NCBI RefSeq assembly: GCF_006345805.1
Contig: NW_021832004.1
Span: 17,246-81,245, forward strand
Source: Octopus sinensis
Taxonomy: Eukaryota
Direction: 5' to 3'
DNA length: 64,000 bases
A program made the translations under genes and the position numbers. Below are positions 366 through 34,949 of this stretch, piece after piece; the first letter of the stretch is position 1, and the number at the start of each line of letters is the position of its first letter. The notes below the pieces were generated by a model. That model was given only the letters and a program-made list of their open reading frames with translations, was not told the origin of the DNA and ran no database searches.

Positions 366-398
366 TAATTTGAATCAGAATGAAATTTCTAAAAGAAA

Positions 399-608
399 GG
401 CGGCCAGCTGGCAGAATAATTTGGACATCGGTGAAAATGGTGAGTGGCATTTCGTCTGTCATTACGCTCTGAGTTCATATTCCGTCTATCTCGACTTTGC
501 CTTTCATTTCTCCGGGGGTCGATAAAAGAAGCGCCAACTGAGCAATGGGGCTCGTTGTAATTGACATACCCCTCCCCCGAAATTGCTAGCCTTCTGCTAA
601 AATTTCAG
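399..608 (+). mobile_element. SINE family A (OK-like tRNA-derived), diverged solo copy with the standard tail
   Basis: ggcggccagctggcagaat head, gagttcatattcc B-box-like motif and ctcgactttgcctttcat..gggtcgataaa body; similar to 5423-6028. Confidence 0.75.
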
Positions 609-4656: not shown

Positions 4657-5422
4657 ATATTACAAGCGTTGCCTTAGAAAGTACGAAACTAGAACTGAAA
4701 AATGCGAACGCTCAAAAGGCTTGCAGAATGTTATAATAAACCTTTAGAAAGTATAGGAGTAGCATTCTTACTCAAAAATATTGGAATCACTATATATTGT
4801 ACATTCTGTGGCATCTTTTTATCACAAGAAATTTGTTTAGTTCATCGAAATTAAGTTATATTAAAAATTAATTAAGTTAGATTATCGTATATTCACTTTT
4901 AACAAAACTTTTGTGAACAAATACATCTTTAGGCGATAATTCAATCTACCAATGATAATTTATATAAATTTACAAGTAATGAATCAAAAATATTTTAGTA
5001 GTAATTTGTTTAATTCGCATAACGATTCCATTAATATGTGTATCATAAGGCAAATTCTCTTTGCATATAATTATTTTGGTTTATTACTTTCGCTGTTATA
5101 TAGATTCACATGCAGTGTGAAATATGTTTTTATATACTTTGGTATCAAAGTATTCAAACGAATTTACTTATTTGAAGTTAAAGATCATAATTTGTACATT
5201 TCCAGATTTTTTTAATTTTATTAAGAACTCGGTTTAATAATTATCGTGACATCGTAAGTCACACATAAGTCCCTTTTCGTTTTAAAATGCCGTACAATGT
5301 ACAATATATAGTGATTCCAATAATTTTGAGCAACAATGCTATTCCCATGCTTTTAAAGGTTTATCATAACATTCTGTAACCCTTTTGAACGAGCGAATTT
5401 TTCAATTTTAGTATATGAATAA

Positions 5423-6028
5423 GGCGGCGAGCCGGCAGATTCGTTAGCACGCCAGGCGAAATGCGTAGCTGTATTTCGTCTGCCGTAACGTTCTGAGTTC
5501 AAATTCCGCCGAGGTCGACTTTGCCTTTCATCCTTTTGGGGTCGATTAAATAAGTACTAGTCATGCACTGGGGTCAATATAATCGAATTAATCCATTTGC
5601 CTGTCCTTGTTTGTCCTCTCTGTGTTTAGCCCTTTGTGGGTAGTAAAGAAATAGGTATTTCGTCTGCCGTTACGCTCTGAGTTCAAATTCCGCTGAGGTC
5701 GACTTTGTCTTTCATCATTTCGGGGTCGATGAATCAAGTACCAGTTACGCACTGGGGTCGATATAATCGACTTAATCCGTCCGTTTGTCTGTCCTTGTCT
5801 GTCCTCTCTGTGTTTAGCCCCTTGTGGGTAGAAAAGAAATAGGTATTTCGTCTGCCGTTGGGTTCTGAGTTCAAATTCCGCCGAGGTCGACTTTACCTTT
5901 CATCCTTCCCTGGTCGATAAATTAAGTCCCAGTTGCGCACTGTGGCCGATATAATGAACTGTTCCCCCCCCCCCCCCAACACCACCACCACAAAATTTTG
6001 GGCCTTGTTCCTAGAGTAGAAAAGGATT
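5423..6028 (+). mobile_element. SINE family A with an internal tandem array (head + 2 body/Tx1-tail units + body/standard tail)
   Basis: Head 5423-5470; units start with gtatttcgtctgccg at 5471, 5655 and 5843; the last unit ends in the poly-C/aaaattttgggccttg standard tail. Confidence 0.9.
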
Positions 6029-7074
6029 CTTGTATATGAATGTGTGTATGCACGAATGTTTGTCTGTACCTAGAGTATGTATGCGTGACTGAAAAAATGA
6101 AAGCATCTGTTTCACTTCCGGTCAGGGAAACCCCATAAGATATTTGATTCAAGTTATTAATCAGAAAGAGTTAAAAGAAACAATCAAATTCAATTTATCG
6201 CCTGCTAAAAATAATTTTATATTGAAGTATATTTAAATAGGAACAGAGGAGAAGGGAGCTGAATACGACGACTTTAATATTTTTGATAAAATCACCACCA
6301 ATTGAGAACCGATTTTGGATAAATATCTTGGTCTTCCATAATAATTCCATTCAAATTTCGGGCCCTCTAAATGAATATTAAAGTGAATTCGAGGAAGAAT
6401 GAAATAGCAAATTTGATTTGAGTGGGATATGAACTTAAGATGGGAAGGATCGTAACTAAATACTGGATGCGATTTTGTCTCTCACTTTATTGATTCTGCC
6501 TATCCTTGAACGAAATCGAACATCTTAAACTGAAACATGTTTGTAAGATGAAAAGGAAAAACCCTGCCTATTTGCATGTTAATAATTCATCGGCCGATCA
6601 ATTTCATATTTTTGCATTCGTTCAATAGTTTAATGATTTCTAACTTTGAGCCAAGGACACGTATTTGTAGGGAAGGTGTCCAGAACATTAAAAAAATTCA
6701 AGCAAGCAACCCACAAGGACTCAAACCACAGGCTTGTTGACAAATAGTTCTCTGTCAAAATCCAAACAATGAGGTTTAGAAGGTAATAAGTGAATATAAA
6801 CAGGTGCATACAGGCTACACTTACAAATAAAAACTATGATCACAAGAAATGGCTTCAAAATGTAAATAAATAAATACGAGTTTGAAACGTGACGACGCGA
6901 TCGATAATGTTGTTTTTCGACACTTGGCGTTATCTGTATTATTCTGTTGTTTTATATCTAAGGGTGTAACTTAGGAACCAATTCGACATAATCTGTTAGA
7001 GATAGAATAAGGATATTTATATTGTTCAAAAGATAAAGTCAGACAATGAAATAGTTGATATTAATATGATATGG

Positions 7075-9992: not shown

Positions 9993-10356
9993 CTAAAAAA
10001 GGAATCCTCTTATAGCCATCACTGGAATGCCTTTCTTTGGAGTTAAACTGGAGTTTTGATAACACAGTGATAACATGTTCGTAAAGGTTTCCTAATTTTT
10101 CGTTTGACTGGCTAGAATTAGCTGCCAATTTCTTTTAATTCACACCAAAGCATCTTTAAAGAGAATATTAAAAGAGGAATGAGCAAGAGTCAGATACCGG
10201 AATGTCGCCGTTTAAAATTTGTCTTCATAGAGAATCTTGATAACCTTGTTATCATTGTGGTTTCATTGCTCCGGTTCACCTCGACCGTCTACTTTATATA
10301 AAACCAATGAAAGGAGTCGATTTTTAGAGTAACATCGACATTGAGTAATTTCTCCT

Positions 10357-10558
10357 GGAGGCACAAGGGCTTAGATTTGTGGGGTGTGGGCTAGTCGATG
10401 ACATGGACCTCAGTATTCATCTGATACTTAATTTATCGACCCGGAAGGGATGAAAGGTAAAGTCGACATCGGTGGAATTTGAACTCAGAACGTAGCGACG
10501 GAGTAAACACCGCTACGCTTTCCGTCCGGCGGGCTAACGATTTTGCCAGCTCACCGAC
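10357..10558 (-). mobile_element. SINE family A solo copy with the standard tail
   Basis: Reverse complement gives gtcggtgagctggcaaaatcgttagccc...gagttcaaattcc...gtcgactttacctttcatccc; the target site is uninterrupted. Confidence 0.8.
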
Positions 10559-10689
10559 TTATCGTTACTAAATAACAAGAGCTCCAATGCATCAGATCTG
10601 TTGTTTACCAAGTTCACGTTTCATGATTGTTAGAGAAATAATTGATGGAATTTGATAAACAGGAGTGTTTACTAACAACGGAAGAAGAT

Positions 10690-16799: not shown

Positions 16800-18522
16800 A
16801 AATGAGAATGAATGATTAACAAAAAATGAAGCGGAGGATGCGGTCGACACCCTCACCCTGAAGACTTTGTTTTTCCCTTTTTTTGTCCTCGCTTAAGCAG
16901 GATCTTTCACTCGCAACATACTTGCTACTGACTTTCATCTCTTACGCGACACACTTTGCAACAGGCATTTCTTTTCCAGCCTTATTTTCCTTTCCTTGTG
17001 GAAATGGAAGCAGTTGACTAAGCCTAAGCTTGAGACGAAAATGTCTGTCGCAATTCCTTTCACTCTCGTCTTCCATACTACCTCTTTCACAACAGCAACT
17101 ACCGAGAGAAAACAAGCTCGCTCCTCCCTATTCAGGGAGGGCAGCGGAATGATCTTAATTACAGATTCGTTCGACAGTTGTACTCTTCTCGAATACGACA
17201 GTAGGTGTTCGACATAAGCCCAGAGCTCAGTCACCTTGGGGCATTGCACAATCGCGTGCAGGTCAGTTTCACTGTCCTGCTCGCATCTTGCATAAACCGG
17301 CGAAGGCGCACACCCGTGTTTAAAGAGCTTATTTCGAACCGGTAAAGCTCCTCTTTAACATTTCCAAGCCAGAGACTTTTAGTAATTATCCATAGGTCCT
17401 GGCCCGAAGGCTCTTCGGAATAGTTTGGCGAGTCGGTCTTCGTCGAAGCCTAGGATTCCCAGGACGTCGTCACACTTGAACTCTACTAACCCTCAATAAG
17501 AAAGACGAGGTAGTACCCCTGCTTCCGGCGTTGTCCGATTGGGAGAGAAACACGAGTGCCTGATGGCACTCTGCTTGCCACGCACCCAACCTCGTTCTAC
17601 GCTTGATCCATGGGTCCAGTTCAGTAAAAGATGTGAACTATGGAAATACCAGCTTGACGAACGGAAGCTACACTTGCTCACCGTCCAGGAAAAACCAGGG
17701 GTGCCTAAGCTTCAGCGCATGTCTGCGCATTTTTAGCAACGGCATCCCGAGCCTACCCTTCAGCGGCTTTTGACAGCAGATTGAGTGCCTTACAAGAGAT
17801 CTGCTGCCCCTTCACAAGAAGCGGAAGAGCATGTGTTCCATCTTGTTTAACCACGAATCGGGACATGGCACGACGGTCAGGTGGTAAGTGATTACAGAGG
17901 TAATAAACACCTCTGCAACCCTCGCCCTCCCTTTCAAGGACAGCCTCCGCTCAGACCAGTCTGAATTAGGAGAGCCACCTGCTCGCACCTCGCTCCAATT
18001 TTTCTCTATCTGGAGATCTGGACCAAACCAGACTCCAAGCTTTTTCACCGGCCCCTCTGTTCAACGTCCCACGACGCTGTCGGAAAGCATCGACTTGCCC
18101 CTTCAGGTGCCGATTTGCAAGCCGAACGATTTATCCGGTTAAGTTTCGCCGCTGCCACCGCTTCGTAATCTCTTAAGCCTCACCTATCTGCTGTAGATGC
18201 TCGATCCGAGATACGATGACAGTGGTGTCGTCCGCGTATGCCAAAGTTGACTTTCTACACCCTAGATCTTGCAGAGCCTCTAACTTCCTCAGCAATGGCT
18301 CGAGGGCCAAGACATAGAGAAGCGGAGAGAGAGAGCACCATTGATGTATCGATCGTTCAATGCAGAGCGGCTCCGAAAAGAAACCGTTTACCCGAACTAC
18401 CGATTCGATGTCGCTGTATAAAGCGGTGATCTATCCAAGGGAGGTCGGGCCGAAGCCAGCCACCGCGAGGACCGCCACCAGATATTAATGGTCTACCCTA
18501 TTGAACGCTTTGGATTGGTCTA
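16800..18522 (-). mobile_element. Tx1/L1-clade LINE, decayed 3' half
   Basis: LDQSKAF, LGVWFGPDLQIEKNW, LSLKGRARVAEVF and QCPKVTELWAYVEHLL...VKEVVWKTR fragments are homologous to 18900-22010. Confidence 0.9.
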
Positions 18523-28120: not shown

Positions 28121-28169
28121 GTATTACTATTATTACTATTATTATTATTACTATTATTATTATTATTAC

Positions 28170-28221
<52 letters not shown>

Positions 28222-28470: not shown

Positions 28471-28511
28471 CTCATTAACCACAACATTATTATTATTATT
28501 ATTATTGTTGC

Positions 28512-28545
<34 letters not shown>

Positions 28546-28580
28546 ATAATAATAATAACTATTATTATTATTATTATTAA

Positions 28581-28620
<40 letters not shown>

Positions 28621-28829
28621 TTTATCCTTATCATTCTTATTGCTATTGTTATTGTCGTTGTTGTTGTCGTTGACGACGAGGTAAGACCTGTTTTGAACGC
28701 TCCGTCAGTTTGAATTTTTCTTGTGTATTTTTGAAGGTTGTTGACTGTTATGTAAGTGTTTTTGTTTTCTAAACCCCTATTGGTGTATAGAAGGGATTCT
28801 TTTCCACTAAGAGTTCTGACGGTCAGTAC

Positions 28830-29751
28830 CTATTTCTTTACTACCCACAAGGGGCTAAACACAGAGAGGAGAAACAAGGACAGACAAACAGATTCAGTCG
28901 ATCATATCAACCCCAGTGCGTAACTGGCACTCAATTTATCGACCCCGAAAGGATGAAAGGCAAAGTCGACCTCGGCAGAATTTGAACTCAGAACGTAACC
29001 GCAGAAGAAATACTTATTTCTTTACTACCCACAAGGGGCTAAACATAGAGGAGACAAACAAGGACAGACATAGGTATTAAGTCGATTACATCGACCTCAG
29101 TGCGTAACTGGTACTTAATTTATCGACCCCGAAAGGATGAAAGGCAAAGTTTACCTCGGCGGAATTTGAACCCACAACGTAACGGCGGACGAAATACCTA
29201 TTTCTTTATTACCCACAAGGGGCTAAACATAGAGGGGACAAATAAGGACAGACATAGGTATTAAATCGATTACATCGACCTCAGTGCGTAACTGGTACTC
29301 AATTTATCGACCCCGAAAGGATGAAAGGCAAAGTCGACCTCGGCGGGATTTGAACTCAGAACGTAACCGCAGAAGAAATACCTATTTCTTTACTACCCAC
29401 AAGGGGCTAAACATAGGTGGGACAAACAAGGACAGACATAAGTATCAAGTCGATTACATCGACCTCAGTGCGTAACTGGTACTTAATTTATCGACCCCGA
29501 AAGGATGAAAGGCAAAGTTTACCTCGGCGGAATTTGAACCCACAACGTAACGGCGGACGAAATACCTATTTTTTTATTACCCGCAAGGGGCTAAACATAG
29601 AGGGGACAAACAAGGACAGACATAGGTATTAAGTCGATTACATCGACCTCAGTGCGTAACTGGTACTCAATTTATCGACCCCGAAAGGATGAAAGGCAAA
29701 GTCGACCTCGGCGGGATTTGAACTCAGAACGAAATACGGCAGACGAAATAC
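28830..29751 (-). repeat. Five tandem 184-186-bp SINE-A body + Tx1-tail units
   Basis: Units at 28830-29013, 29014-29197, 29198-29381, 29382-29565 and 29566-29751; each starts gtatttc on the minus strand and ends gtgggt(a)..taaagaaata(g/a). Confidence 0.95.
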
Positions 29752-30003
29752 GAATTTCTTTATTGCCCACCGGGGGCCAAACATAGATATGGACAGTACA
29801 ACTGATGGGATCAGGGAATCGATATGATTTTACATAAATGTGACATTAAAAATAAAATACAATACATAAAAATCGAATGGAATACACAGTACAAAAACAA
29901 TACAAATGAAGCGATGATCAAGTTACGCTCCGATCGCACAAGCCCCGATCTACCGCTGATACCTTTTTATTTTTCCTTTTTTTTTTTTTTTTTCCTCGTC
30001 TAT

Positions 30004-33000
30004 TCACACGGTTCCTTGCATGCACAACACTCGTGCAACATACTTCCATCTCTTTTGGAACGTACACTCTGACAGACACCTCTTCTCCAGCCACAGTTTC
30101 CTTTTCAAATGAAAAGAAAAAAAGGATCGTAAATTGTCACCAGAGATAAAGTTGCCTGTCTTAATTCCTTTAATCCTAGTCTTCCATACAGCCTCTTTTG
30201 CTATTGCTACAACCGTGAGAAAACAATTCTTACCTTCGTTCGTTAGAACTCCCGGTGGGTCAATTTTTATAATTGACTCAGTCGACAGCCGTACTCTTCC
30301 TTCGCCGGACAACAGATGTTCAGCATAAGCCCACATTTCAGTTATCTCCGGACACTGAACAATAGCGTGAGGGACGGTTTCCCTGTCCCCCCCCGCATCT
30401 TGGACAGGTCGGCGACTGACGTTTACCATGTCTTGCGAGCTTATCCCAAACGGGCAAGGCACCTCTGTAGCATTGCCAGGTTAAGGACTTTTGGAAGTTG
30501 TCCAACGTTCTCAACCCGAATGTACGATGAAACAAGCTGTCCAGTTGAATAAATCCGAGACCTAGAGTCGACCCCAGGCCATCGTCGCATTCAGACTCTA
30601 CCAACCCACTATATAAAATCCGTGTGGAACCCTCACCGCTGGCGTTGCCCGAGCGCCGGAACAGCAAGAGGGCCTTACGGCACTCTTTATGCCACTCACT
30701 CGACCTCGGTCTACGAGAACACCAGGCTTCCTGTTCGCAAAAACTCTTGAACTCAGGGAACATTTGTCTGGCCAGCGGAGACCACACCCGTTCACTATCC
30801 AGGAGAATCCAGAGGTGCCTCAACCTCAACGCATGTCTGCGCATCATTAACCAAGGCATCCCTAAACCTCCATTTAAAGGCTTTTGACAGCAGACAGAGC
30901 GTTTCACAAGTGGAGACCTGCCCTTCCACAAAAAGCGAAAGAGCTGTCTCTCCAACCAACAACACTGTCTGAAGGCATCGACTTGCCAACCCAGGTGCCG
31001 AGCTGCAAGCCGACCGACTTTTCCTGGTTAATCTTTGCTCCTGCTACCTCCTCGTAAGCCTCAATAGTCTTACCTACTTCACGTAGGCGTGCCACTGTGG
31101 TTACACTGATAGTGATATCATCCGCGAAAGCCGTAAAAAACTCCTCTAGTCCTGGTTCTCTCGGGATGCCACTCAACCTTTGCAGTAATGGCTCGAGAGC
31201 CATCACATACAAAAGTGGTGAAAGCGGACATCCTTGACGAACCGAGCGTCTGATGCAGAACGGCTTCGAAAGGAAACCGTTCACCCGAACTATCGAGTCA
31301 ATGTTGTGGTACAAAGCGATAAACCACCTGAGGAAGCCAAGGCCCAGGCCAAACCGCGCAATTACAGTCGCTAGGTATCGATGGTCAACCCTATCAAAAG
31401 CTTTAGACTGGTCCAAATGCACCAATGCCCCACCTTTGCCAGATTTATTACCAAACCTCTCTATGGTATAGCGAATAAGATGGAGGGTATCCTGAATGGT
31501 TCTGCCTGGGATGGCACATGTCTGTGCCTCCCCGACTATACCATTCGCGACACGCGCCAACCTTTTTGCTAGAACCTTGACCAAAATCTTCACTTCTGCG
31601 TTTAACAGAGTGATGGGCCTGAAATTCTCTAGAACGTCCCCCTTGTCCGGGTCCTTTCTGACCAACGTCACTACTCCCCGGCGCACAGATCTGGGGATAA
31701 ACCCATTCTGTTTCCAGTTCGCGTACACGTCAGTCAGTAGTTGCCCGAACAAGTCTGGCATACATTTATACAGCTCGTACGGAAGACCATCAAGTCCCGG
31801 TGACTTACCCGCTTTACAATCGGCCAAAGCCTCCATCACCTCCTCAGGTGTGATTGGCCCTTCGCAAGACTCCGCATCCGACCCCGAGAGGCACGGCAGC
31901 CCTGTAAGAAAGTCCTCGAGGGCTCTCCCACTACCAGGACCGCCGTCACCCCCGAACAGCTGGGCGAAGTACTCCCGAAAGACCTCACACATTTTCTCGG
32001 GTTCGTTTATCAAGACACCATTTTGATTCGTCAAAGACCGAATAGAGGAACTATTTCCTTGCCGAGCTTCCACCACTCGGGCCCATCCAGCGGCTTTGAT
32101 TCCTTCACTTCCCATTGCACGTAACTTAGCTCTGGTAATACTTCCCATGTGGTGGGCTTCAAGATGCTGGTTTAACTCCAGTCTTTTCACCCTCGCTTGG
32201 TCTGTATTACCAGTCCTCCAGGCTTCTTCTAGTTCCTTAACTAGACCATCTCCTATTTTACGTCCCTTCTTAGCTAAACTTATGCTAAACCTAATAGACT
32301 CATATTTGATGGCTCTTTTTAGGGCGTGCCACCATTTGTTATTAATGATGGTACCTGTTAATGCCCTCTGTATTAACATCTTGATCCGCTTTCTGTACTC
32401 CTCAATCGCCAAAAGGGACGTATTGAGTTTCCAGTAGCCAGATCCCTGTCTATGCAACTTATCTACCGTCAGTTTACAGGTAACCATCTTGTGGTCACTG
32501 TAGCTGACTAGAAAAAACTGTGGACACTCAACTATGGACTTATCTTTTTCTCTAATTAAAATCCTATCTAGATATGTTCTGGTAGACCCGTCACTATTTG
32601 ACCACGTCCACTGTGGAGTGTTCGAGTGCTCCAACCTATATGGATCTGCTAGCTGAAATTGACTTAGCAGATCCCGAAAGCCTGGGTTACATTTTCTGTT
32701 CATGTTCGAGTTTGAGCCAACACAATCTGTGTGTGCTGCACATATTGTATTAGAGTCTCCTAACACTACTAGTGAATGCGACGTGGCTAGGAACTTTCCT
32801 AGGCCACGAAAATATTCAGTTTGCGGGCCAATAATGTTTGGTGCGTAAATAGCGACCAGCCTGATTGTCTTGCCACAACTGAATGTCAAGTCGAGAACGA
32901 CCAGCCTGCCTTCTGGGTCAGAAAAAAAACAACTTTTTCTCGGCTACCCGGTTTCTTTTTAGTAGGACCAACACCCCACCCCCACCTCCCGCCCGACTCG

Positions 33001-33181
33001 GAGAAACGTATTTCTCGTAGCCGTTCAGGAGGGGGAGCAGATCTCTTGGCCCCTTCACCCGGGTTTCCGTTGCAACAATTACATCCAAATTTCTCCACCT
33101 GATGTCATTCAGAAAGCGTCCTTGCTTCCAGCTTGACAACAGGCCATGAACATTTAAACAACCAATGTGAATAGCCATCAC
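30004..33181 (-). pseudogene. Tx1 ORF2 (APE endonuclease + RT + zinc knuckle), several frameshifts
   Basis: GCLNVHGL, VATETR, AIYAPN, LGD, TYLDRILI, YSDHKMV (APE); LDQSKAFDRV, VRQGCPLSP, AFADD (RT); CPRCGG..ETVPHAIVQC. Confidence 0.9.
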
Positions 33182-34634
33182 TTACCTGTTTAATTAGGAT
33201 TGTCGGGTGGAGGGGGACCCTCCACCTTTTTTTGATCCAGGGTCGGAGGTGGACGGTCTTGGGAAATAGATTTGTCAAAATCCCGTCTCACCACCGACAC
33301 AGAATTATCAGGTGGAGGGGGAATCTCCACCTTTTCCTTTCTCGCGGGATCGGAGCTGGTAATCCCTGAAATATCGACTTGTTAAAATCTAATCTCAATG
33401 AAGATACAGTCTTTCTGTACTTATTTGTAGAATTCTATAAGTCTTATTTGAGACTTCATATATGTCGTATTGATAAATTCCTCTGAAAGGTTATCAATTT
33501 TTTTTACAGTCTTTATGAGTTGAATGTCTCTCATGAGCTCAGTATCTTTAGTGTATACGGCTATTATGCCTTTTTCTTCTTTTTCTCTTCTGGCAGTCTT
33601 TTTGGTCGTTGTTCTGTAGTAGTCGCCGCTCTCAGTTGAGTTGCTGGTAGTTTCCTTTGTTTGTTGTTTTTTCTCATCTGTTTCTTCTTTTTCATCTTCC
33701 TCTTTGTCTTTTTTCTCTCCTTCCTCCTCTTCCTCATTTTCCTTGCAGTTCCTTCGAATGTGGCCTAATTGACTACATAAAAAACATCGAGATTTTCGGC
33801 TCTCAAAAACACCACGAGGTTCTCCTCCCCTACCTCAATTGTCTCGGGAATTGCTTGAATTATTTTAGGGTCCGCTTGAATAAGGAGATTAATGTTTTGA
33901 CCATCCCAGTGTGTGTTTTCGGTAGCGGTAGCCTGGAGGAGAGTAATTTTTTCTTCCTCTTTGATCAGGACTGCCGCCAACAACCACATAGGGTCCACTT
34001 CCGTGGGACCATTGTAATTTTATTCTGGACGTTCTCATCCCATATATAGGAGATAAGCTCCACGTCGTTGGTTTTCAGCGTTTCTACTGAGTTCTTTTGT
34101 GCTATTTCTTATTGGTGAACCTTACTTCCACCGTTCCGAATTTCTTGCCTCTTCTCAGATAAACTATGTCGTCCCATATTGGCTTTAAGCACTTTTCTAT
34201 TTCTCTTCTGACATTCTTTCATTTTTTTCTTTTTTGTAGACAATATGTTTTGAAAATTAAAGTTTTTTGGTTTTTTTCTTGTAATAACTTTTCCGGAGGT
34301 TCAATTTTCACAACGTTGTCAGTTATTTTCATCATTTGGCTATATTTCATAAAGTCGCTCTTATTCGTCGACAGCAGCCAGATTCCACTCCCAGCTGCCA
34401 ACGCAAAACATTTTTTCCCATTTTTGGTTCTGTCTGGATGCTAGGCACATCAATTACTCTTTTCGACACAGTGCCTTTGTTCTCTGGCAAAGTCGGAAAC
34501 TCTTCTGGTGATAGTTCTGACGAGCTTTCAGACACATCTCCAAAAAAATCAAATATATTATCTATTCTGCTATTCTTTCTTGTAGCGAGGGAAACCCTTA
34601 TTTCCCTGTCTGTAGTTGGCTCCTCGCCGGACAT
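33177..34634 (-). pseudogene. Tx1 ORF1 (gag-like) with CCHC knuckle, frameshifted
   Basis: Starts MSGEEPTT; the minus strand near 33733-33780 reads RCFLCSQLGHIRRNCK (CX2CX4HX4C); ends just before the ORF2 ATG. Confidence 0.75.
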
Positions 34635-34869
34635 GTATTTCCTCCTCTCAACAGGAGAAACAAGTATTCTGCTCCAACGGCAGGCTCTATGCTAGACGAC
34701 ATTCTTCCCCCTAAAGGGGGAATGAACAACGCGTGCTACTACAAGCACTAAGTGTTTTCAAATAAAAACTCCAACAGTTAAGTTATTCAACAGTTTAACA
34801 AGAAAAACACAGTTATTAACAATATTAACACCAAGAAGAAACAGCAACTTTTACCACGAACACATGTGT

Positions 34870-34931
34870 GACAGACTAAATACGGCTACGCATTTCGCCC
34901 GGCGTGCTAACGTTTCTGCCAGCTCGCTGCC
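34870..34931 (-). mobile_element. SINE-A tRNA-like head (A box) plus target duplication
   Basis: Reverse complement is ggcagcgagctggcagaaacgttagcacgccgggcgaaatgcgtagcc-gtatttagtctgtc, matching the head at 5423-5484. Confidence 0.9.
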
Positions 34932-34949
34932 ATTCTGACGCCCAGTACC

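Follow-up and report, generated by a model that had tools for sequence, protein, structure and literature searches.

The genome of Octopus sinensis (NCBI RefSeq assembly GCF_006345805.1) contains, on contig NW_021832004.1, a composite in which a long interspersed nuclear element (LINE) is nested among tandem units of a short interspersed nuclear element (SINE); the stretch analysed here, called the window, comprises the 64,000 nucleotides from position 17,246 to 81,245 of the forward strand of that contig. Tandem Repeats Finder (TRF) reports in the window a tandem repeat with a 184-bp period (28827-29787; 5.2 copies; 89% matches), and five units of 184-186 bp can be delimited there on the minus strand (28831-29752). 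Each unit opens with the sequence xGTATTTCGTCTGCC, named J, and continues with a body, which contains a B-box-like motif (GAGTTCAAAT(T/C)CC), and a tail region of 65 nt; the 15-nt junction sequence is written xJ where the base x preceding GTATTTC matters. Every unit starts at xGTATTTC, and this is the position right after the last base of the LINE, as a preliminary description of this DNA, made from its letters, had noticed. Read along the minus strand, the order is flank, SINE head, xJ, LINE, five units, and the flank repeated, and the whole composite lies within the target-site duplication (TSD) of a single founding SINE insertion (Table 1). The most diverged of the units is the 3'-most one, unit E, which bears the tail variant AATCTGTTTGTCTG where units A-D have AATACCTATGTCTG, and 3' of it the upstream TSD recurs in DNA that is not SINE. 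On the plus strand, at 5421..6031, direct reading showed a second such array, missed in the preliminary description.

Besides the B-box-like motif, a possible A box (TTAGCACGCCGG) is visible for the SINE head, and searches with ARAGORN and Rfam within the window gave no tRNA or Rfam identity for it. Three tail types are found on these SINEs, namely T1, the stacking subtype, its sister subtype T2, and a C-rich type. The T1 units end in ...TGTCC(C/T)CTCT(A/G)TGTTTAGCCCCTTGTGGGTA(A/G)TAAAGAAATA, and the adjacent LINE, whose last base is at 29753, ends in TGTCCATATCTATGTTTGGCCCCCGGTGGGCAATAAAGAAATT. A local alignment of the last 42 nt of the T1 tail with the 3' end of the LINE gives 34/42 identities and a score of 42, against 12.8 +/- 2.2 for 2000 shuffles, none of which attains the T1 score. 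The array with a LINE-like tail reported earlier is therefore real and the similarity significant, although the figure given for it, 35 of 44 bases, becomes 34/42 in a formal alignment. The T2 tail is even closer to that of the LINE (36/42; 0/2000 shuffles reach its score), and as little as one tail base may separate T1 from T2. The SINE thus has a 3' end homologous to that of the LINE. The two solo copies noted before at 399 and 10357 have head and body in common with the arrays and do carry the different, C-rich tail that had been described, and no similarity to the LINE tail was found for the C-rich tail of these window copies.

Table 1. Coordinates of the SINE and LINE features in the window, and target-site duplications (TSDs) of solo T1 SINEs at other loci.
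Feature	Positions	Strand	Evidence or remark
Founder TSD, upstream copy GGTACTGGGCGTCAGA	34934..34949	-	14/16 positions match 28815-28830; the pair brackets the composite
SINE head, 49 nt, A-box side, only head of the composite	34885..34933	-	BLAST against head consensus and fuzzy search
Upstream 15-nt xJ cgtatttagtctgtc, directly before LINE body	34870..34884	-	2/15 differences from downstream xJ
Site-specific LINE of the L1 superfamily	29753..34869	-	Open reading frames and Pfam matches; intact 5.36-kb relatives
Unit A, 186 nt, xJ + body + T1 tail, abuts LINE 3' end	29567..29752	-	95% identity to unit C
Unit B, 184 nt	29383..29566	-	97% identity to unit D; bodies 100%
Unit C, 184 nt	29199..29382	-	95% identity to unit A
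Unit D, 184 nt	29015..29198	-	97% identity to unit B; bodies 100%
Unit E, 184 nt, probable body and tail of the founder	28831..29014	-	86-90% identity to A-D
Founder TSD, downstream copy GGTACTGACCGTCAGA	28815..28830	-	Pairs with 34934-34949
Second array: head	5421-5469	+	
Second array: two stacked body + T1-tail units	5470-5653, 5654-5841	+	
Second array: founder body with C-rich tail	5842-6031	+	
Second array: TSD GTATATGAAT	5411-5420 and 6032-6041		Brackets whole array
Old solo SINE, C-rich tail	397..600	+	
Old solo SINE, C-rich tail	10350..10560	-	
Solo T1 SINE TSD, locus L007			GGTTCATGTGCACCC
Solo T1 SINE TSD, locus L029			GGTAGACAC.CTCCTGCGCAA
Solo T1 SINE TSD, locus L036			GGTATAGGATGGTGG
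Solo T1 SINE TSD, locus L013			GATATATAGATAGAC
Solo T1 SINE TSD, locus L015			GGTAAATTTATTGGATTA

The LINE copy of the window has an internal deletion of ~229 bp and broken frames. A 300-nt query from its 3' end, run against the whole genome (2.72 Gb in 13,516 contigs), gave 403 first-look candidates, 40 of which were scored (97-100% identity), and 38 other LINE loci, chosen through the LINE 3' end, were fetched as a local sample (L001-L038). Almost all of these copies are full length (36 of the 37 assessable, ~5.36 kb). Intact copies encode a 509-aa ORF1 with a CCHC zinc knuckle (zf-CCHC) and a 1133-aa ORF2 with an apurinic/apyrimidinic endonuclease (APE; Exo_endo_phos), a reverse transcriptase (RVT_1) and a zf-RVT domain, according to Pfam. 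Among solved structures in the PDB, human LINE-1 ORF2p matches best (E 2e-64; R2, 1e-20), and the element belongs to the L1 superfamily. It has the domain set of the Tx1 clade (ORF1, and ORF2 with APE, reverse transcriptase and a C-terminal zinc-binding domain), as well as that clade's habit of inserting at a specific target sequence within a repeat. The LINE is Tx1-like in behaviour, and membership in the clade is plausible; a homologue search meant to name the clade returned only unnamed proteins with identity of at most 40%. The annotation of O. vulgaris lists 421 recent 'L1-Tx1' insertions with a total of 2.29 Mb, ~5.4 kb each (PMC13282606), a set that resembles the present LINE (403 candidates, 5.36 kb) and is compatible with it, though circumstantially. 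The bodies of the fetched copies have a median pairwise divergence of 0.6%, and so the LINE family is very young. Inside ORF2, a 176-aa antisense open reading frame is conserved in two intact copies (L004:2998-3528 and L009:2998-3528, minus strand) and is probably a chance frame.

The LINE is site-specific for the junction between head and body of the SINE. Directly 3' of it, xGTATTTCGTCTGCC and a SINE body are found in all 38 fetched copies, and a SINE head with xJ precedes 34 of the 36 full-length ones, the other two being preceded by a tail and a partial head. Genome-wide counts were made with exact patterns over the whole genome, and flank breakdowns were taken from the first 100 matches listed; by this procedure, 153 exact LINE tails are found (counting those with A, C or T at flank position 15) and J is next in 92 of the 100. 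On average, the upstream xJ and its downstream counterpart differ at 1.4/15 nt despite the 0.6% divergence of the LINE itself, and variants confined to the upstream copy (GTCTGTC, TTTAG) recur across loci, so that the upstream xJ is probably carried along by the LINE as a leader. Between loci, the final 184 nt of the LINE do not differ (median identity 100%), whereas the unit that comes next is only 86% identical; the units were therefore not brought by the LINE, which reached the SINE copies late, when these were already old.

The base x is C or G and is identical upstream and downstream of the LINE at 37/37 loci (L001-L037), and a LINE sub-lineage of 11 copies was found only with C at x (hypergeometric p ~3e-4). 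Among resident SINEs, GCGTAGC-C and GCTTAGC-G subfamilies are seen, and either each LINE lineage is restricted to a single SINE subfamily or the base x travels with the LINE. At another locus (L017:1-6000; G000:C10:6618541-6626538, reverse strand), a perfect 16-bp TSD (AGTATTGTGATGCACG) brackets a 6-kb composite that reads head-xJ-LINE-xJ-body-T1 tail, then (TA)7 and 17 nt of unique DNA (31 nt together), then a complete second SINE. Either the composite was retrotransposed whole, from a single RNA, or a founder SINE received a large read-through segment, and the arrangement hints that large read-through RNAs can be mobilised.

The tail subtypes of the SINE behave very differently across the genome. 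The exact T1 tail end, CCCTTGTGGGTA(A/G)TAAAGAAATA, occurs in 76,155 copies, with xGTATTT directly after 34,883 of them (45.8%), a frequency well below the earlier expectation that such tails would be almost always followed by gtatttcgtctg. The exact T2 tail, ...GGGCAATAAAGAAATA, occurs in 12,321 copies (flank position 15 again being A, C or T), and J is next in 1 of the 100 listed, the flanks mostly starting with AGAA(A/T) or TATA. In terms of insertion signatures, J follows the LINE in 92-100%, T1 in 46% and T2 in ~1% of cases, and the local sample agrees, with 32 T1 tails directly before J and 20 not, against 2 and 13 for T2 (Fisher p = 0.001). In a hand count of the first 100 T1 flanks listed, all on contig 1, there were 50 J, 16 other flanks starting with GGTA, 18 TA-rich ones, ~4 with an AGAA start or a partial head, and 12 others. 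About 80% of the T1 flanks that start with GGTAT contain the full J; GGTAT has ~4 million sites in the genome (extrapolated from the window), of which J represents a few percent, and the preference must therefore extend well beyond the pentamer. The exact 24-mer junction of head and J is present in 39,619 copies, giving ~1.9 T1 tails for each; this excess fits the many headless units expected, bearing in mind that the head pattern, with its CpG sites, is probably lost faster than that of the tail.

Many T1 SINEs, some of them later struck by the LINE, are ordinary insertions in unique DNA. TSDs of 10-21 bp were found at L005, L007, L013, L015, L019, L029 and L036 and around both window arrays, giving the dispersed copies with target-site duplications that characterise SINE2 elements. 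The GGTA start that is common to the TSDs of solo copies and to J points to a single nicking preference. In about 6% of cases, the T2 flank is a SINE head that begins at its position 17 (AGAAACGTTAGC), T2 stacking has a different phase of 207 bp (tail, partial head, J, body; L010:5607-6078 and L026:39-136), and some T2 tails have extra AAGAAAT repeats.

The organisation of the arrays was compared between loci. A single head at the 5' end and a single TSD pair are seen in both window arrays and at L009 (ACAATCCTCTTAAGTAAGG) and L012 (TATATATGCATACATATA), in agreement with the preliminary description, which had predicted that arrays carry a single head; in eight arrays not selected through the LINE, there is one head per 2.0 tailed units on average. 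The 3'-most unit, that is, the founder, has a C-rich tail at L002, L004, L010, L024 and L031 and in the second window array, and a T2 tail at L001, L009, L023 and L038 and in the second array of L004, while the internal units have T1 tails. Since these founders differ in tail from the units stacked upon them, such arrays cannot have been produced by duplication of the founder. Neighbouring units are mostly no more alike than units from different loci, the median body identity being 0.917 within arrays and 0.890 between loci.

The explanation that best fits these results, with a probability of roughly 0.6, comprises a history of the window and a mechanism. A putatively tRNA-type SINE with head, body and T1 tail would have inserted into a GGTAC... 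site, generating the 16-bp TSD; headless units of body and tail would then have been added exactly at J, each regenerating J; a block of two units would have been duplicated locally; and, last, a young 5.4-kb LINE of the L1 superfamily would have inserted into J, between the head and the first unit. In mechanistic terms, the endonuclease and reverse transcriptase of the LINE lineage would nick just 5' of (G)GTAT, the endonuclease having an extended preference for the full J, and cDNA synthesis would start at the common ...AATAAAGAAAT tail. With a SINE RNA as template, the 5' end of the cDNA would be resolved by homology with the resident copy, which would leave no second head and give a seamless repeat. 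The LINE would carry a SINE-like 5' leader (part of the head plus J), and its 5' junction may likewise be resolved by homology with the resident head. That the LINE lineage supplied the enzyme for the SINE units, and that the 5' junctions form in this way, we infer from sequence comparison, and retrotransposition rather than recombination appears, from the same kind of evidence, to be the source of the stacking.

Several results weigh against this explanation. About half of the T1 tails are dispersed insertions in non-SINE DNA with their own TSDs, mostly at GGTA or TA-rich sites, and the machinery is thus not strictly site-specific for the SINE; this comes near to the common solo insertions that the preliminary description had named as refuting its model. 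The T2 subtype has the tail closest to that of the LINE and yet avoids J, from which it follows that tail similarity alone does not explain targeting, and of the earlier proposal that a SINE subfamily gained its target by capturing the LINE tail, the tail match stands but its sufficiency does not. The present LINE family, at 0.6% divergence, is far younger than most of the units, whose bodies are ~89% identical between loci (~11% pairwise divergence); no overlap in activity was seen between the units and the LINE family sampled, and this family cannot have built most arrays, so that an ancestor or relative must be invoked as the likely mobiliser. Of the preliminary description, the site-specificity of the LINE for the SINE junction is upheld by the flanks of the LINE (38/38 fetched copies, 92 of 100 listed), and the stacking of tailed units at that junction by the single heads and TSD pairs of the arrays, but the role of builder given to the present LINE is not. 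A hairpin common to the tails was not demonstrated, since a small GCCC/GGG(C/T) stem is predicted but shuffles fold at least as well. The age gradient expected of stacking, with the oldest unit at the 3' end, was weak, the 3'-most unit showing 7.2% divergence and the others 6.4% (p = 0.23, n = 15). Finally, local duplications are clear in near-identical neighbouring units at L008, L014 and L032, in the 368-bp dimer pattern of the window array (A~C 95%, B~D 97%), and at C1:8970276-8971801 and C1:7400076-7400476, where variants private to the array are present in every unit.

Target choice might instead be inherited through the location of the donor copy, and not through the enzyme or the tail, a tentative reading considered rather unlikely. 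RNA transcribed from a copy at J would read a few or more bases into GGUAUUUCG and anneal with them to the nicked target, so that copies at J would give rise to others at J or at partial, GGTA-like matches, and T2 masters, which would lie beside AGAAAC(GTTAGC) in SINE heads, to others at AGAA sites. If true, this would explain both the split in targets between T1 and T2, which can differ by a single base, and the existence of a J-specific LINE with a T2-like tail, and SINEs would be converted into tandem repeats by retrotransposition in a regular and self-reinforcing way.

It is improbable that the arrays are ordinary SINE-derived satellite DNA whose sequence the LINE merely happens to target. 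By this route, a solo T1 SINE bracketed by GGTA(T), once where J begins and once where its GGTA-type flank begins, would give a first dimer by microhomology-mediated duplication, and unequal crossing-over would expand it; the T1 flanks that start with GGTA could supply the microhomology, and the higher-order pattern of the window, the near-identical neighbours and the private variants listed above are what such expansion leaves. The likeness within arrays and the higher-order repeats typical of satellites do hold for some arrays, the window dimer for example, but the medians within arrays and between loci are close, and most neighbours are as unlike each other as units elsewhere. Moreover, a C-rich or T2 tail on the 3'-most unit is impossible if stacked T1 units were duplicated from the founder, T2 SINEs with the same body and nearly the same tail form no such arrays, and ~35,000 junctions at one exact nucleotide, which is also the site of the LINE, would have to be a coincidence. 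On balance, insertion at J is probably the main route, with local duplication adding to it; part of the window array itself, at variance with the preliminary description, arose by local duplication of a 368-bp dimer.

Little probability is likewise attached to the possibility that multi-unit arrays were made in single retrotransposition events and copied as blocks, either from RNA polymerase III read-through transcripts of an existing array or by a reverse transcriptase jumping end-to-end between SINE RNAs. The unit consensus lacks a TTTT terminator (a run of four T), one TSD pair surrounds whole arrays at non-SINE sites, the window dimer could equally be a copied block of two units, and the L017 composite, two SINEs and a LINE in one perfect TSD, is of the kind that such copying would give. 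A few tail-to-head junctions with 0-4 nt between them, as produced by template jumps, were seen at L014 and L027. Template jumping, however, predicts a head for each unit, and heads between units are rare, with 1 full and 5 partial ones in 71 junctions; arrays that end in a resident founder with a C-rich or T2 tail are left unexplained, and no two sampled loci have the same multi-unit block.

That the units are 3' transductions of the LINE, one being added at each jump by read-through, was rejected as extremely unlikely: a body with a T-type rather than a C-rich tail does follow 33/38 LINE copies, and a rare-looking downstream J variant is common to L009, L012 and L017, but the first unit is 86% identical between loci where the LINE end is identical, the J variant is that of a common SINE subfamily (3,644 exact copies, a head preceding 85 of 100 listed), no shared private sites were found that would make the LINE copies of L009, L012 and L017 a clade, and arrays free of the LINE are the rule, tail-J junctions numbering ~35,000 and LINE copies only a few hundred.

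Mostly full-length copies, as seen for the octopus LINE, and secondary targets of the TA or microsatellite type are in keeping with the Tx1 group. Target-specific LINEs of the APE type are concentrated in the Tx1 and R1 clades and have transposons among their targets (PMC4640811). The closest precedent for the octopus composite is the crocodilian SINEU/Tx1-Mar system (Kojima 2015, PMC4494074), in which a group of Tx1 LINEs and their SINEs prefer one site in Mariner-N4_AMi, tandem SINEU-3 copies arise by sequential insertion, SINE families differ in target strength (90%, 23% and 13%), and some Tx1-Mar LINE families bear the head of their SINE partner at the 5' end. Both systems combine a target-specific APE-type LINE with short non-autonomous elements at one preferred site inside a repeat, and the octopus LINE, like some Tx1-Mar families, would have SINE-head sequence at its 5' end. 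The octopus target lies inside the SINE itself, whereas the crocodilian one lies in an unrelated DNA transposon. In addition, the crocodilian tandem copies are full elements that sandwich a TSD, whereas the octopus units are headless, seamless and 184 bp long, with ~35,000 junctions, and the octopus heads appear tRNA-like where those of SINEU are derived from small nuclear RNA (snRNA).

Other families offer partial parallels. Tx1L in Tx1D of Xenopus laevis, Keno in U2, and Kibi and Koshi in microsatellites (PMC4640811, PMC4494074) are, like the octopus element, APE-encoding LINEs of the L1 group inserted at one sequence in a multicopy repeat, possibly a transposon, but a partner SINE as the target is undescribed for them in the literature surveyed. 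R2 and R1 of arthropods have precise junctions, depend on target flank carried by the RNA, and have non-autonomous derivatives at the same site, as is seen or proposed here, and the idea of co-transcription and homology-guided integration for these elements is cited in PMC4494074. Unlike the octopus LINE, R2 uses a restriction-like endonuclease and targets rRNA genes, and the effects of leader and flank proposed for octopus are read from DNA sequence only. Alu is a preferred target of its own mobilising machinery, that of L1, through the endonuclease motif, and forms head-to-tail clusters. Alu copies are complete and their target is a loosely defined tail motif, TTTT/A, whereas the octopus target is an exact position between the A-box and B-box regions and the units are headless. 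What sets octopus apart is a target within the SINE itself, together with headless, seamless units that form real tandem repeats tens of thousands of times.

If stacking is indeed retrotranspositional, a SINE would have been turned into tandem repeats without recombination, in a genome with ~35,000 tail-body junctions and 76,000 exact tails, and this would have come about because the site that its mobilising machinery prefers to cut lies within the SINE. The system could then serve as a model for the exact choice of target by APE-type LINEs, for the resolution of 5' junctions by homology, and for a LINE that shelters inside its own parasite. The arrays, and the LINE nested in them, will also be mis-annotated as satellites or as many SINE 'families', and with SINEs accounting for ~12% of octopus genomes (PMC13282606), such mis-annotation affects estimates of repeat age and activity.

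Some minor features of the window and of the sampled loci were also recorded. A second, 100% identical occurrence of the window LINE and array lies on the chromosome-scale contig C17 (G000:C17:21967132-21968166), which makes it probable that the window contig (C8475) is a haplotig or a duplicate left unplaced. In unit A, positions 29737-29751 read gtatttcgtctgcc-gtatttc-gttctgag where the other units have gtatttcgtctgcc-gttac-gttctgag, and this repetition of 7 nt from the start of J accounts for the length of 186 nt. Two long (TAT)/(ATT) microsatellites are found close to the array, on its outside (28122-28220 and 28486-28653), and TA-rich repeats host many T1 and T2 insertions elsewhere. Other tRNA-like sequences, such as GGCGCGATGGCCAAGTGGTTAGCGCAGCGGACTCGCGGTCG, adjoin arrays at L012:6150-6200 and L028:5588-5680 and probably represent a different SINE family or tRNA genes; at L028, the body that immediately follows the LINE is interrupted by one of them.

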